DNA from: Lenisia limosa
Taxonomy: Eukaryota > Protista > Breviatea
Length of the DNA stretch: 64,000 nt
Direction of reading: 5' to 3'
Assembly: GCA_001655205.1 (NCBI GenBank)
Contig: LPNZ01007654.1
Location: 1 to 64,000 of the forward strand
Positions 28,270 to 32,560 of the stretch are shown here, in pieces. Every line of letters begins with the position of its first letter. Within the stretch, counting starts at the first letter, position 1. Under the pieces are notes generated by a model. The model ran no database searches. It was not told the DNA's origin and was given only the letters and a program-made list of their open reading frames with translations. The translations under genes were made by a program, and so were the position numbers.

Positions 28270-31200
28270 ATGAGTATCCCAATTGACATCGACTCTTTGA
28301 CCGTCCAAAAGGGCTCAGCCATTGATGACCTTTCGTCGTCCCCCTCAAGGTGCGAAGCTAGCTTTTAGGCTTGGATATGTTCTTAGCGTCTTCTCTTCAT
28401 AATCATTAATTGTTAGTCCGGCAAAGTTCCCTCGCCCCCTTCATGCCCAGTCGAGGAGGTCATTTTCATCAGGTACGTTTGTATGTTAATGCGATGATTG
28501 CCCTTATTGTTTCAAATGTTTTAATGGAAATTTTCTATCGGGTGGTAGGTATTTCTTACGACACTTTGTGTGAATGGTATTTCTCTATTATCTCTCATTT
28601 CTGCAACAAAGCCACTTATTCTAGTTATGACCCCTCATGTCTGCTTATGACCCTTGTGTCCGTTTATGACCCTGACAGTGAATCGACGACGAAGTTCTGC
28701 CAGTGAAAAGGAAGAATCAGTGAGCAAATCACCCCAAGCAAGTGAGCTTTATCGGATAAAACTTAATGTGCAATACTTGATTTCTTTTTTCGTTTGTCTA
28801 TTTCACACCCTCCGAAATTTCGATATTCTGTGAAATTTAATTTTTCTTTGGGCTTCTGTGGGCTTTAAAAATTTATTTGTGTTACTTTCTTGACTTGAAT
28901 AATGTTTATCTCTAAATTCGTAATCGCTGTAACAAGTGCCATCATTACCAAATACATTCCTTTACGAAACTGAAAGAAAAATATGTAAAAATTAAGTTCA
29001 AGTCCTTGTATCATCATGTCCGAATTTTCCATGCTTGATACTCTAGAATTCGTATCAAGATTTTTTTTATTTTACTAAGTAGGTAGAAAAGGCAGATCGC
29101 TTGCGGCGGCTCGTCAAGATACATCTGATTCCGATAGTGACTCTGACTACTCCCGTTCCGGGTCGGAATCGGATTACTCCTCGCAATCAGGCTCCGGAGT
29201 ATGTCAAGTTTGTTTTGTTTTGTTTTTATTTTCGCTATTTTGGCTGACAGTTCAGAGCTACAGAAGTGATGGAGCCCCCAGGTTGTCGCCGATGCAGAGA
29301 TATGTTGTAAGTTTGGCAACGGTGTATTCTTAGGTCTTTACTCTCCAATGAAGGCCCTGACTCCCTCAGAAAGGTGAAGACTTCTGTATCCTTGATTCAC
29401 GACTTGCCAACTACGGGCGACAGGAAATCAATTTTGCTGAGGTATGCACCCCTCTCATCTTATTCACGTTTTTAGCGCTTTATGCCAGGCCTTATGGCTC
29501 TGAGGGAAAGATGTGGGAAAACCAAGCCTCTTCAGGGTGAGTTGCTTGCCTTGATTCCCAAATATATCATAGTCACAGATGATATGATATAGTATCATAT
29601 ATCATATAGCTATGATATACTACTATACTATTTGATATCAATGTATTATGATGTTGTATGACATAGACTATATACTAAAGAGAGTGAGACAGCATTGTCT
29701 ACTATGTAATACATGTGCGATTAAATATCTTATCATAGTACTATGTACTACATGTCGATATTATTGATATTAGTATAATATAATGTACATGATACCAAAT
29801 ACCAAAATATTCCCTTTTTGGCAATAATGTCTGCAGGTGCGCGTATTGTTGCGTGTTTGCACGTGACTGCTGAAACGGCTGTTTTGGTTGAAACTCTCGT
29901 GGCTCTTGGCGGTCAAGTCAGGTTAGTGGTTTTGATTGCTGCAGTACAAGTTTTCTTATTCACAACCTTACAATAACGTTGTAGATTGGCAGCTTGTAAC
30001 ATTTTCTCAACTCAGGACCAAGCAGCGGCGGCTTTGGTGGCAGGTGGAGTGCCTGTGTTTGCGTGGAAGGGTGAAACTGAAATTGAGTTCTGGTGGTCTC
30101 TGCAGAAAATTGTACAAAAAGAGGGCTTCATTCCTAATATGGTAAGTCTGTCGGCACCATAACTTTTCAGCTCATGGACGACGGCGGAGATTTGACCGGG
30201 TTTATTCAGAAGAACTATCCAGAGGTCTTTAAAAACCTCCGGGGAATCACTGAAGAAAGTGACTCCGGAATCCACCGTCTTTATCAATTGGCCTCGCGCG
30301 GTCTTTTACCGGTCTGGGAGAGAGGTAATTTGTAAACTGACAAAATAAAATCCCATGTATCAGCTTTAGCGTCGACTGATTCAATAGGTTCCTGCTATGA
30401 ATGTCAATGATACTATCACCAAAAGCAAGTTTGACACCTTTTATGGTAGGATCAACCATTGTTGATATGATATGTTTTTATTAGAGAGTTTAGGATATCA
30501 CAGTCTTAATTTTTCCGACATTTTTAGGTTGTCGGGAAAGTGTCATTGAAGCACTGAAGAGAGGAAGTGGACTTATGATCACAGGCAAAACTGTGGTGGT
30601 GAGTGGGTTTAGTGGAGTCTTTCATTCCAATAAATGCCTGTTGAGCATATGAACTTGAATTAAATTAAATTCTAGCAGTTTCTCTCTCTTGACATTTACC
30701 CATTTGTTCAGGTTTGCGGATATGGAGATGTTGGTAAAGGAGTGGCTGCAGCATGTAAGGCAAAAGGCGCACATATGGTTGTCACCGGTATGGTGATATT
30801 CCCTCTTGACATTTGACAGTTCAGCTTTATGATATGAAGTCTAGTTGTTGGTCTTATCATTACCACTTTAGAAACAGACCCAATTTGTGCCCTTCAAGCT
30901 TGCATGGAGGTAAACTAAACACGGATTTTTTATTATTATCCTCAAACTTCTCTCATTATCTCACCCAAGTGAATACCCCCCCCCCNNNNNNNNNNNNNNN
31001 NNNNNNNNNNNNNNNNNNNNNNNNNNNNNNNNNNNNNNNNNNNNNNNNNNNNNNNNNNNNNAGTCATAAGACTGGAAGATATTGTTGGCGTTGCCGATGT
31101 GGTCATCACATGCACCGGTATGTTCACTTGTGATGTATGACACACCTTAGCCTTTAATGCTATCACGTTATGATGATATATTGTTTTTTTATTATTATCC

Positions 31201-32560
31201 TATGCATTGTACGGTTTGGGCTTGGGTTCCTTTTTTTCAATTTATGACAAATTTGAGAGGACTACACTTCTAATATCTCTTCTTTGCCTGATGGTGTAGA
31301 CTGCTTCAGCCAGATACTCACTTGCTTTATTTCTCATTGCTACCTATTTGTGAGGGCTCTGATTGGTGTAGGCAATACCTCTGTCATCACACGTTCACAC
31401 ATCGAAAACATGAAACCCTACTGCATCATTGCAAATATGGGACACTTTGACTCTGAGTTGAGTGAGGATATTGTTCAGGTTGGGAGGGTTAGTTGTTTCC
31501 CAGTGTAGAGATCAGTAAATCCAATATTTATCTGATTAATATAACATATGATATGATATCTTTGAAAATATTGGATTTTAATTAAAAACAATCTTTTAAT
31601 CTTAATCTTCTATTGCAAGAAACTCCTTTATCAATTCTCATTTACATTTCCGTGAAACAACCTGACCTTAACAAGGCTGACGATATTGAATTCAAAGAGG
31701 TGAAGCCAATGCTTGATGAAATCTGTCTTCCTTCCGGAAAGAGAGTGTTACTCGTTGCTGATGGTGGGAAGTGGGAGTTGTAAGGAATATTGGAAAGCGT
31801 CAAGATTATTTGGACAATCGTAAGGAATGTTGGGGGTACTATCATAATGACCACTGGTTTCTATACTAACCCCCAAGGCCGGTTGCTAAATGTAACCCTC
31901 GGCGGCGGACACTCCCCCTTTGTTATGTCAATTTCATTCACCAATCAGGTATGAATTGTCGGATACATTGCTGAAGGTTATGTGAGGCTTCTGAAATGTG
32001 GAAGATGATGAACACGTAGTTAAAATATTGTCAACTATGGCTGGTCTGTGGTGTGACTTGACACATTGTAGGTCCTTGCCCAAATGGAGATATTCGGTCC
32101 TAACAACAGTAAATACGCGTCTGGGGAAGTGTACCTTCTCCCAAGACAGGTTGGAAAACGAGTGTGCACTATATTTCGAAGTGTCATGAAGAGTATCCTG
32201 TACATTACCATCCAGCTTGACGAAGAGGTGGCCCGTTTGCATCTTGCCGTTTTCAGCGCCCGCCTCACAGACTTAACCGACTCTCAAGCCTCTTTCGTTG
32301 GCCTTAACAAGAAAGGCCCTTACAAGCCCACAGGCTACAGGTATGAGGCCGAATCCTTATTGCTTGTAATGTGTCATATGAATACATCTCATGTTGCTTG
32401 TAATGTGTCATATGAATACATCTCATGTAATATGATTCATAAAATTAACCTTTTAGATATTGACAAAGCCATCTCAATACTATTTTTTTTTTTGTTTCTC
32501 TGATTTATTTGAATACATTTCGTCTTCTACGTGCCAATGTACCAATGTACCAGGTGCTAA
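28270..32560 (+). CDS. Adenosylhomocysteinase-like protein (AHCY/AHCYL family) with a ~120 aa Ser-rich N-terminal extension; start tentative
   Basis: Motifs: [108 protein letters not shown]. Upstream exons at 28270-28349, 28417-28472, 28679-28741 and 29083-29198 are phase-compatible. Confidence 0.9.

Follow-up and report, generated by a model that had tools for sequence, protein, structure and literature searches.

In the window, a stretch of 64,000 nucleotides from the Lenisia limosa contig LPNZ01007654.1, we found an expressed and intact gene that we are inclined to read as a stem relative of the IRBIT/AHCYL (AHCYL1/2) lineage in a protist, i.e., a non-canonical AHCY paralogue that is probably regulatory. 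The encoded protein has 554 aa and consists of a 122-aa tail rich in Ser, Arg, and Asp, followed by an AHCY-type domain. This layout of a Ser-rich N-terminal extension and an AHCY domain had been proposed in a first-pass annotation, and it is real and transcribed. In animals, IRBIT/AHCYL proteins act as hubs in the regulation of Ca2+, pH/bicarbonate, and nucleotides. Reviews describe them from multicellular animals only, e.g., vertebrates and arthropods (PMC12955632), and our full-text literature searches found no paper tying IRBIT/AHCYL to unicellular eukaryotes.

Gene structure and transcription

The gene lies on the forward strand and has 22 exons, 21 of which are coding. The structure is based on spliced transcripts, assembled as two poly(A) RNA contigs, and on a second DNA assembly that is independent and free of gaps. 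The RNA contigs (records 9 and 10) stem from a poly(A) run of the same study as the assembly. Record 9 (503 nt) joins the end of a 5'UTR exon at 27998 to 28254-28349, 28417-28472, 28679-28741, 29083-29198, and the first 11 nt of 29256-29306. Record 10 (1338 nt) begins with the last 9 nt of 29256-29306 (first letters AGATATGTT) and runs through 16 more exons to 32457 and beyond. The two records do not overlap, as neither covers 31 nt within the 51-nt coding exon 5. That tail and domain lie on one continuous mRNA is strongly implied, although no single contig shows it directly.

The 5'UTR exon spans 27838-27998, with an approximate start that was counted from the 161 nt of record 9 upstream of 28254. 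Its end (27969-27998) equals the loose end of record 9 (...CCAGCCAACAAGCCTTGAGTTAGGGGAACT), and gtaagc comes next in the genome. The start-codon exon (28254-28349; record 9 and splice flanks) has the ATG at 28270 and encodes tail residues 1-27. An in-frame stop is located 10 codons upstream of this ATG. The next two exons encode 19 residues (28417-28472; AG/GT flanks) and 21 residues (28679-28741; donor GT at 28742). Their junctions were deduced from the length of record 9, in which 121 nt between the listed pieces correspond to 2 + 56 + 63. The exon at 29083-29198 occupies positions 377-492 of record 9, and the last tail exon (29256-29306) encodes 17 residues. The first-pass annotation had placed four upstream exons between 28270 and 29198 in phase before the AHCY domain. 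Record 9 joins these exons and begins upstream of them, in the 5'UTR exon. The boundary between the third and the fourth of these exons had to be corrected to 28741|29083, which gives ...SPQA-S-RKGR.

The AHCY domain starts with the 24-residue exon at 29370-29441, which is joined (29441|29476) to a 21-residue exon at 29476-29536 (RNA and splice flanks). At the 3' end, the last coding exon had been thought to start at 32554 and to end the protein in GYRC. It starts at 32457 (joint 32340|32457, GT..AG), and therefore the C-terminus is GYRY, an ending typical of the family. This last exon (32457-32493) finishes Arg and Tyr and is closed by the stop TGA at 32461-32463; the 3'UTR reaches to at least ~32493. 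GT..AG is present at all junctions read directly in the window, and the junction across the assembly gap was resolved via L165, a contig of an independent ENA assembly. An Rfam search of the window gave no match, and neither did Pfam for a downstream ORF that appears EB1-like by eye.

Integrity of the contig

The assembly gap at 30986-31061 lies between an exon of 12 residues (30872-30909) and an exon whose visible part (31062-31117) encodes (G) and 21 residues; both are supported by RNA and L165. L165 matches the left flank (27727-30985) at 100% identity, and on the right (31062-38503) there is a single mismatch in 7,442 bases. According to L165, the true content of the gap is 51 bases after a poly-C run, namely the intron end ...TTCTAATCCAG and the first 8 exon bases GGGTTCAA. 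The RNA contig spans the gap in frame (...ACMEGFKVIRLE...), and a DNA contig from run X1, which is 25 letters shorter at this place, bridges it as well.

We also considered an artefact, such as a contig from an animal contaminant, a wrong join across the gap, or a pseudogene in decay. Such a reading would fit a draft scaffold with 16 N runs and an assembly that was made from a mixed culture. Against this, two independent assemblies agree and close the gap, DNA coverage stays even at a depth of 38.8 over the whole gene, and the spliced RNA shows zero differences from the genome. The joined ORF is intact over all 21 coding exons. Tiny introns of 29-34 nt occur (34 nt before 29476; 29 nt after 30141, absent from the RNA), and the protein is only ~52% identical to any animal AHCYL. 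Animal contamination, a gap mis-join, and a pseudogene are thus largely ruled out, and we consider an artefact highly improbable.

Departures and retained residues in the AHCY domain

The exon translations match the Pfam families AdoHcyase and AdoHcyase_NAD, with E-values down to 7e-19 for one 52-aa exon (29985-30141; E 6.9e-19, PDB comparison, and RNA), which ends in IPNM before the 29-nt intron. The position of this intron, after PNM, is common to the Lenisia gene and an AHCYL gene (L003). Further support by Pfam and RNA was obtained for the exons at 30528-30598 (23 residues) and 32216-32340 (also PDB), and by RNA for those at 31676-31763 (30 residues) and 32072-32149 (26 residues). The motifs EESDSG, KFDT, TLGGGHS, and AAC...FWW, named in the first-pass annotation as departures from the canonical enzyme, are all present in the spliced protein. 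We compared 146 near-invariant columns, for which a set of 39 canonical enzymes shows at least 97% fixation. The Lenisia protein departs at 25 of them, AHCYLs depart at 23-36, and canonical enzymes at 0-3. The domain is hence clearly non-canonical. Among the 25 departures, 17 are private to the Lenisia protein and only 8 overlap with AHCYL departures, where we calculated from the counts that ~5 would be expected by chance.

The EETTTG motif is changed to EESDSG in the exon at 30171-30311, which also contains DDGGD and has AHCYL1/AHCYL2 as best PDB matches. The AHCYL equivalent is EESVTG. EETTTG is present in 152/152 canonical genes from loci and in every canonical database match listed. We searched 1.84 billion protein representatives with one exon, and no EESDSG was found among the best 150 matches, which were mostly exon-sized fragments. 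KFDN is replaced by KFDT in an exon of 19 residues (30388-30445; Pfam, RNA, and motif comparison). Elsewhere, KFDT was seen in a few animal AHCYLs. The loop NLGCATGHP reads NVTLGGGHS in an exon of 23 residues (31878-31948; RNA), in which the His and FVMS/FTNQ are kept and which matches only canonical AHCY in the PDB.

Several substrate-site motifs that are lost in AHCYLs are kept in the Lenisia protein, namely CLHVTAE, GHFD, GH..FVMS, and FTNQ. The canonical His/Thr/Glu substrate-site residues are found in the exon at 29837-29921 (Pfam, RNA, and motif comparison). GHFD, which is GHSN in AHCYLs, is found in the 35-residue exon at 31372-31478 (RNA, PDB, and motif comparison). The NAD-fold glycine motif GYGDVGKG (30712-30787; Pfam and RNA) and the C-terminal KPxxYRY are also kept. 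None of the classical catalytic residues (His, Asp, Glu, Lys, Asp, His, and His by human-enzyme numbering) is among the 25 departures. Because these residues and the substrate-site motifs are all retained, SAH-hydrolase activity may persist, judging from the sequence. The domain differs both from a normal SAH hydrolase and from a typical animal AHCYL.

The serine-rich N-terminal tail

The tail is of low complexity, with 29% Ser and with Arg-rich and Asp-rich stretches. A motif scan gave the basophilic-kinase sites RRRSS and RKGRS, followed by an acidic Ser cluster of the CK2/CK1 type; RKGRS and the acidic Ser/Tyr cluster are encoded by the exon at 29083-29198. Phosphorylation of the IRBIT tail follows a logic of priming and subsequent action of CK1/CK2 (PMC13319452). 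We built a profile HMM from 66 non-redundant bilaterian IRBIT tails and scored the Lenisia tail together with 2000 shuffles of it. The real tail reached -12.8 bits, the shuffles had a mean of -13.0, and 914/2000 shuffles reached the real score. The likeness to the IRBIT tail that had been pointed out in the first reading is hence compositional only, as the profile scores the real tail like its shuffles. Shared features are limited to composition, position, and the general order of basic site, acidic Ser cluster, SP, and KGxDFC. The conserved IRBIT Ser-rich core (with SPREK) is absent from the tail, a direct reading of residues 1-122 revealed no PP1-docking motif (K/R-x-V/I-x-F), and Pfam had no match in the tail exons.

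Phylogenetic position and searches for relatives

We calculated a tree of 72 rows under the site-heterogeneous model LG+C20 PMSF. It included 20 animal AHCYLs and marine-eukaryote canonical fragments. Matches from metagenome and GTDB scans served as the canonical sample, which is mostly bacterial and has no labelled full-length eukaryotic enzymes. These scans, made with one exon, gave only canonical and probably bacterial enzymes with at most 67% identity. The Lenisia protein and the 20 animal AHCYLs form a clade (UFBoot 100, SH-aLRT 99) with a stem of 0.48. Within it, the 20 sampled animal AHCYLs together form the sister group of the Lenisia protein, which is not nested among them and groups with no canonical sequence. 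In a placement scan over 115 branches of a fixed backbone, the best position was the branch that separates AHCYLs from every canonical row. All other placements were at least 39.6 lnL worse and were rejected (p-AU at most 0.010). A free alternative, in which the AHCYLs join four long-branch bacterial sequences and the Lenisia protein stands outside, was not rejected (p-AU 0.079). The AHCY/AHCYL phylogeny suggested in the first-pass annotation thus favours a sister of the AHCYL/IRBIT clade and leaves this one topology standing. Long-branch attraction is possible because both the end branch of the Lenisia protein (1.3) and the AHCYL stem are long.

At 22 AHCYL-diagnostic columns, the Lenisia protein has the AHCYL state in 5, the canonical state in 12, and another residue in 5. 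The shared states are Cys128 (in the first domain exon, 29370-29441), Ala198, Ser277, Cys414, and Met419; each of the 51 canonical rows has at most one AHCYL-diagnostic state. GHSN, the deletion of one loop residue together with loss of the His, and TAQT, all hallmarks of AHCYLs, are missing. Pairwise identities amount to a three-way tie, with 51.5% between the Lenisia protein and AHCYL, 50.7% between the Lenisia protein and canonical enzymes, and 51.8% between AHCYL and canonical enzymes. In PDB searches with single exons, AHCYL1/2 was the best match for three exons.

We also performed three protein searches, and neither the Lenisia protein nor a non-animal AHCYL-like protein was among the matches listed, which were dominated by animals. 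With an animal AHCYL as query, the best 120 matches listed contained only bilaterian AHCYLs. With a planctomycete enzyme, only bacterial enzymes were listed. A profile of three AHCYLs and the Lenisia exons was weak, with only animals among the matches listed. The literature searched contained no report of an IP3 receptor in Lenisia limosa, nor of a second AHCY.

Interpretation

We slightly favour the view that the Lenisia protein represents a third kind of AHCY-family protein. A different origin would be independent, lineage-specific divergence, in which a fast-evolving duplicate of the breviate's canonical AHCY was freed from some constraints and acquired its own Ser-rich extension, and the grouping with AHCYLs results from long-branch attraction and a few convergent substitutions. 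Such a protein would likewise be a paralogue with a regulatory role or impaired function, but no IRBIT relative. In line with such an origin are the tail, whose likeness to IRBIT tails does not go beyond composition, the equal identity to AHCYLs and canonical enzymes, and the very long end branch of 1.3. The surviving topology (p-AU 0.079), the 17/25 private departures, the lack of GHSN, of the loop deletion with His loss, and of TAQT, and the lack of any other non-animal member among the matches listed point in the same direction. The clade support of 100/99 under a site-heterogeneous model, with a common stem of 0.48 that is not near zero, argues against it, as do the rejection of all other fixed-backbone placements and the five AHCYL-diagnostic states, compared to at most one in 51 canonical rows. 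We rate independent divergence as rather unlikely.

The protein could also be a working SAH hydrolase, i.e., a fast-evolving active enzyme of an anaerobic protist with a phospho-regulated extension, so that its IRBIT look would be incidental. In favour of this, the gene is expressed with a complete ORF, none of the classical catalytic residues or substrate-pocket motifs is lost, GYGDVGKG and the C-terminal K..YRY are intact, and the PDB matches of the exon with the catalytic His loop are all canonical enzymes. However, the load of 25/146 departures equals that of the inactive animal AHCYLs, compared to 0-3 in 39 real enzymes. EESDSG puts an Asp in the cofactor-contact triplet, whereas all 152 canonical genes retain EETTTG, and the change from KFDN to KFDT was otherwise seen in AHCYLs only. 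We regard a working SAH hydrolase as unlikely.

For a stem relative of the IRBIT/AHCYL lineage, the following mode of action is proposed. The AHCY fold probably still forms the tetramer of the family. It probably also retains binding of an adenosine-type ligand, given that the residues of the substrate pocket are kept. The protein appears to have left behind the constraints of a housekeeping enzyme, as suggested by the 25/146 departures including NAD-cofactor contacts (EESDSG and KFDT), which would make it most likely a regulator or sensor and not the main cellular SAH hydrolase. The tail would act as a multi-phosphorylated docking arm that is used as in IRBIT, where the phospho-serine cluster binds basic pockets of partners.

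Given a correct placement, the duplication and the N-terminal phospho-tail are older than animals, and the catalytic pocket was lost afterwards in the animal line. More tentatively, both the duplication from AHCY to AHCYL and the phosphorylatable N-terminal arm might have arisen in or before the breviate/opisthokont ancestor. The Lenisia protein would then be a surviving intermediate in which the regulatory tail and a relaxed cofactor site are combined with a complete substrate pocket. If so, the role as a signalling adaptor would have come first in the IRBIT family, and catalysis would have been lost only afterwards, in the animal line. With a stem relative in a protist, the origin of this pseudo-enzyme family would be older than animals. 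Such a relative would also serve as a natural intermediate for working out the order of events (tail, loss of cofactor constraint, loss of the catalytic pocket) and provide a simple unicellular system in which to seek the ancestral partners of the family. If the likeness is convergent, the gene is an independent case of an AHCY turned into a tailed regulator and informs why AHCY is prone to such a fate.

Comparison with known systems

Canonical AHCY/SAHH shares with the Lenisia protein the two Pfam domains, the catalytic residues, the substrate-pocket motifs, the glycine motif, and the C-terminal Lys/Tyr at ~51% identity. It differs by the 122-aa extension, the 25/146 departures, EESDSG, KFDT, and the altered loop of the Lenisia protein.

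Animal AHCYL1 (IRBIT) and AHCYL2 (Long-IRBIT) have a disordered Ser-rich extension of ~100-120 aa directly before KGxxDFC and an AHCY fold ending in YRY, as in Lenisia. Solved structures of their AHCY-like domains are 3MTG and 3GVP. FC (Cys128), AAC (Ala198), EES (Ser277), Cys414, and Met419 are common to both, ITCTGN and a 31-residue stretch read alike, and both have a similar number of departures from positions that are invariant in the enzyme. In contrast, the tails have no sequence similarity beyond composition, and that of Lenisia has neither the KxIQF PP1-docking motif nor the IRBIT core. Lenisia CLHVTAE and GHFD correspond to CTHITAQ and GHSN in AHCYL. Unlike AHCYLs, the Lenisia protein keeps Gly-His in the catalytic loop without the one-residue deletion, and FVMS/FTNQ. 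EESDSG, W196L, D328G, and other changes are private to it. Moreover, it is only ~52% identical to the animal AHCYLs, and the host is apparently not an animal.

In Drosophila, dAhcyL1 and dAhcyL2 were proposed as dominant-negative partners of canonical Ahcy (PMC4926864), a role that has been disputed (PMC12955632). The Lenisia protein resembles them as a tailed, non-canonical AHCY paralogue; it could form hetero-oligomers with the canonical enzyme and thereby adjust how SAH is cleared.

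Gene structure and expression

The plus-strand gene at about 27838-32493 is eukaryotic in structure and rich in introns, and its single-exon translations match Pfam AdoHcyase and AdoHcyase_NAD; the 52-aa exon 29986-30141, for example, gives E 6.9e-19. Public sequencing runs were searched with sampled words: 99% of these occur in one DNA run and 22%, roughly the exonic share, in a poly(A) "metatranscriptomic" RNA run from the same 2016 study. Contigs of the DNA and RNA runs were placed on window positions 28000-32800, which gave two spliced RNA contigs. The 503-nt contig (record 9) carries 161 nt of a 5'UTR exon that lies upstream and has its last base at 27998, then 28254-28349, exons 28417-28472 and 28679-28741 (assigned from length arithmetic, 2 + 56 + 63 = 121 nt) and, in its 3' part, 29083-29198 followed by 11 nt of the next exon. 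The first letters of the 1338-nt contig (record 10), AGATATGTT, close exon 29256-29306, and the contig spans every later exon. Where its junctions are directly legible in the window, they are GT..AG, and introns down to 29 and 34 nt are spliced out. The AHCY-type gene is real and expressed.

The first-pass annotation had joined four upstream exons in phase ahead of the domain; in record 9, the tail exons 28254-29198 are spliced together. Two boundaries had to be moved: the exon 3/4 junction, placed at 29087, is 28741|29083, and the last exon starts at 32457 instead of 32554. With this start, the protein ends in the family-typical ...KPTGYRY, with the stop TGA at 32461-32463. The joined CDS of 1665 nt encodes 554 aa with no stop inside, and an in-frame stop lies 10 codons before the ATG at 28270. 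Both RNA contigs enter the 51-nt exon 5 without overlapping there; hence, a single mRNA bearing tail and domain is strongly implied rather than directly seen.

Continuity and frame across the assembly gap are settled. The RNA contig bridges 30910 to 31062 with seven additional letters and the frame intact (ACME-GFK-VIRLE), and in run X1 a DNA contig reads through the gap and is 25 letters shorter there. An ORF of the window is also recorded in an independent ENA assembly (NODE_89, 54 kb; L165), which is 100% identical over 27727-30985 and shows a single-base difference in 7,442 over 31062-38503. There, the 76 N of the window are 51 bases, ...CTCTATCGAGTCGTTTTTTAGAGTATCGAATTTTCTAATCCAG|GGGTTCAA, after a poly-C run. 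What the gap conceals is thus an intron end and the first 8 bases of the exon. The poly-C run at the gap start, about 10-11 bases long (window 30976-30985; L165 4918-4928), probably explains why the scaffold broke there while the other assembler read through.

Short tandem duplications occur in three introns of the gene: 19 nt x2.5 at 28625-28673, just upstream of the acceptor; 20 nt x2.7 with repeated gtaagg at 31780-31833, next to the donor; and a perfect 34 nt x2 at 32360-32428 in the last intron, where X1 contigs break. The 300-nt intron at 29540-29830 is filled with AT-rich, partly palindromic low-complexity sequence (gatatcata/tatgatat). The leap of one X1 DNA contig from 29613 to 32744, with a shorter side of just 21 letters, is probably a mis-join caused by repeats. 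An ankyrin-repeat ORF lies just upstream (window 26923-27273; L165 840-1190). By eye, the next plus-strand gene downstream (32860-33200) looks like a putative microtubule end-binding protein of the EB1 type (…TELLNFVNELLQTNYTK / VEQFASGAPHCAILDAVFPG); its read-through ORF had no match in Pfam.

Phylogenetic placement

Run metadata (a poly(A) metatranscriptome from a mixed culture, 2016) and the very small introns are consistent with Lenisia limosa, a breviate, as the source. Breviates branch beside apusomonads and opisthokonts within Obazoa (PMC12453579). Reviews assign AHCYL1/2 to multicellular animals (PMC12955632), and our literature search found no paper joining IRBIT/AHCYL with unicellular eukaryotes. 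Two further AHCYL-type genes, at L003 5484-7859 (Logan contig, SRR12113391) and on L002 (ENA metagenome scaffold), are AT-rich and contain introns; their N-terminal exons are rich in Ser and Asn, and they carry the unusual motif FAWTNETD. An L003 intron matches one of the Lenisia gene in place and phase, past ...PNM and ahead of (L)LDDGGD.

A quick tree (43 rows) placed the protein as sister of the animal AHCYLs. A site-heterogeneous tree of 72 rows x 439 columns comprised 20 labelled animal AHCYLs, the Lenisia protein, 37 canonical genes (GTDB and metagenome loci), 2 planctomycete enzymes and 12 canonical fragments, each 215 aa or longer, one of them a marine-eukaryote transcript; its canonical rows are mostly bacterial and its AHCYLs bilaterian. 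It returned the same sister position (UFBoot 100, SH-aLRT 99); the stem shared with the AHCYLs measures 0.48 and the end branch of the Lenisia protein 1.3. When the protein was grafted in turn on all 115 branches of a backbone from which it had been left out (LG+F+G4), the best branch was the split between AHCYLs and all canonical rows, and the remaining branches were at least 39.6 lnL worse (p-AU ≤0.010). In 22 columns, AHCYLs and canonical enzymes are fixed for different residues; at 5 of these (Cys128, Ala198, Ser277, Cys414, Met419) the Lenisia protein has the AHCYL state, whereas no canonical row among the 51 exceeds 1.

The phylogeny that the first-pass annotation had called for thus gives the sister position, while a free search in which AHCYLs and four long-branch bacterial sequences were forced together without the Lenisia protein was not rejected (delta lnL 31.4, p-AU 0.079). 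Both lineages are long-branched. On balance, we lean modestly towards shared ancestry with AHCYL.

In the 72-row and placement trees, the joint lineage attaches, weakly supported, among proteobacterial-type AHCYs; the marine-eukaryote canonical fragment falls elsewhere, with Latescibacterota, Spirochaetota and Bdellovibrionota sequences (weak support). How AHCYL arose in relation to the canonical enzyme of eukaryotes may merit proper study.

AHCY domain

The motif departures listed by the first-pass annotation all recur in the spliced protein. The exon bearing EESDSG was scanned against 1.84 billion representatives; among the best 150 of 341 matches, none carries EESDSG or exceeds 66% identity, and every "EES" match looks like animal AHCYL. 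The protein is ~52% identical to animal AHCYLs over ~455 aa. Identities in the trimmed alignment (51.5% to AHCYL, 50.7% to canonical enzymes, 51.8% between AHCYL and canonical, 65.7% among canonical) put its distance from the enzyme level with that of the animal pseudo-enzymes. Among 146 columns that are at least 97% fixed across 39 full-length canonical enzymes, 25 are altered in the Lenisia protein, compared with 23-36 in animal AHCYLs and 0-3 in canonical enzymes. The cofactor-contact triplet (TTT>SDS) and KFDN>KFDT are among these changes, the latter found elsewhere only in a few AHCYLs.

Comparison with IRBIT

Residues 1-122 form a tail with 35 Ser, 13 Arg and 11 Asp. Basophilic sites (RRRSS, RKGRS) come first; after them lies an acidic cluster of Ser and Tyr, in which residues 81-94 contain at least five CK2-type sites (S-x-x-D/E), and then come an SP site and KGEDFC. 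In IRBIT, a priming site leads to CK1 sites and these to the CK2 cluster, through which the IP3 pocket is bound (PMC13319452), and the predicted order of kinase sites here recalls this logic. Homology of the tails, which the first-pass annotation had likened to each other, is not demonstrable: against a profile HMM built from 66 non-redundant IRBIT tails of bilaterians, 914 and 1001 of 2000 shuffles scored at least as high as the real tail (357 and 528 without composition correction), and the tail has no PP1-docking motif. The resemblance is one of composition, position and general order.

AHCYL1/2 are the best PDB match for three exons, and the catalytic-loop exon matches canonical enzymes only. 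Unlike AHCYLs, which have lost them, the protein retains CLHVTAE, GHFD, FVMS and FTNQ, as well as the catalytic-loop Gly-His without the one-residue deletion of AHCYLs. The Lenisia protein, a non-canonical paralogue with an N-terminal tail, is a variation on the AHCY/AHCYL theme, and we infer a regulatory role for it. Most likely, it sits outside animals on the stem of the IRBIT lineage, with its substrate pocket preserved.
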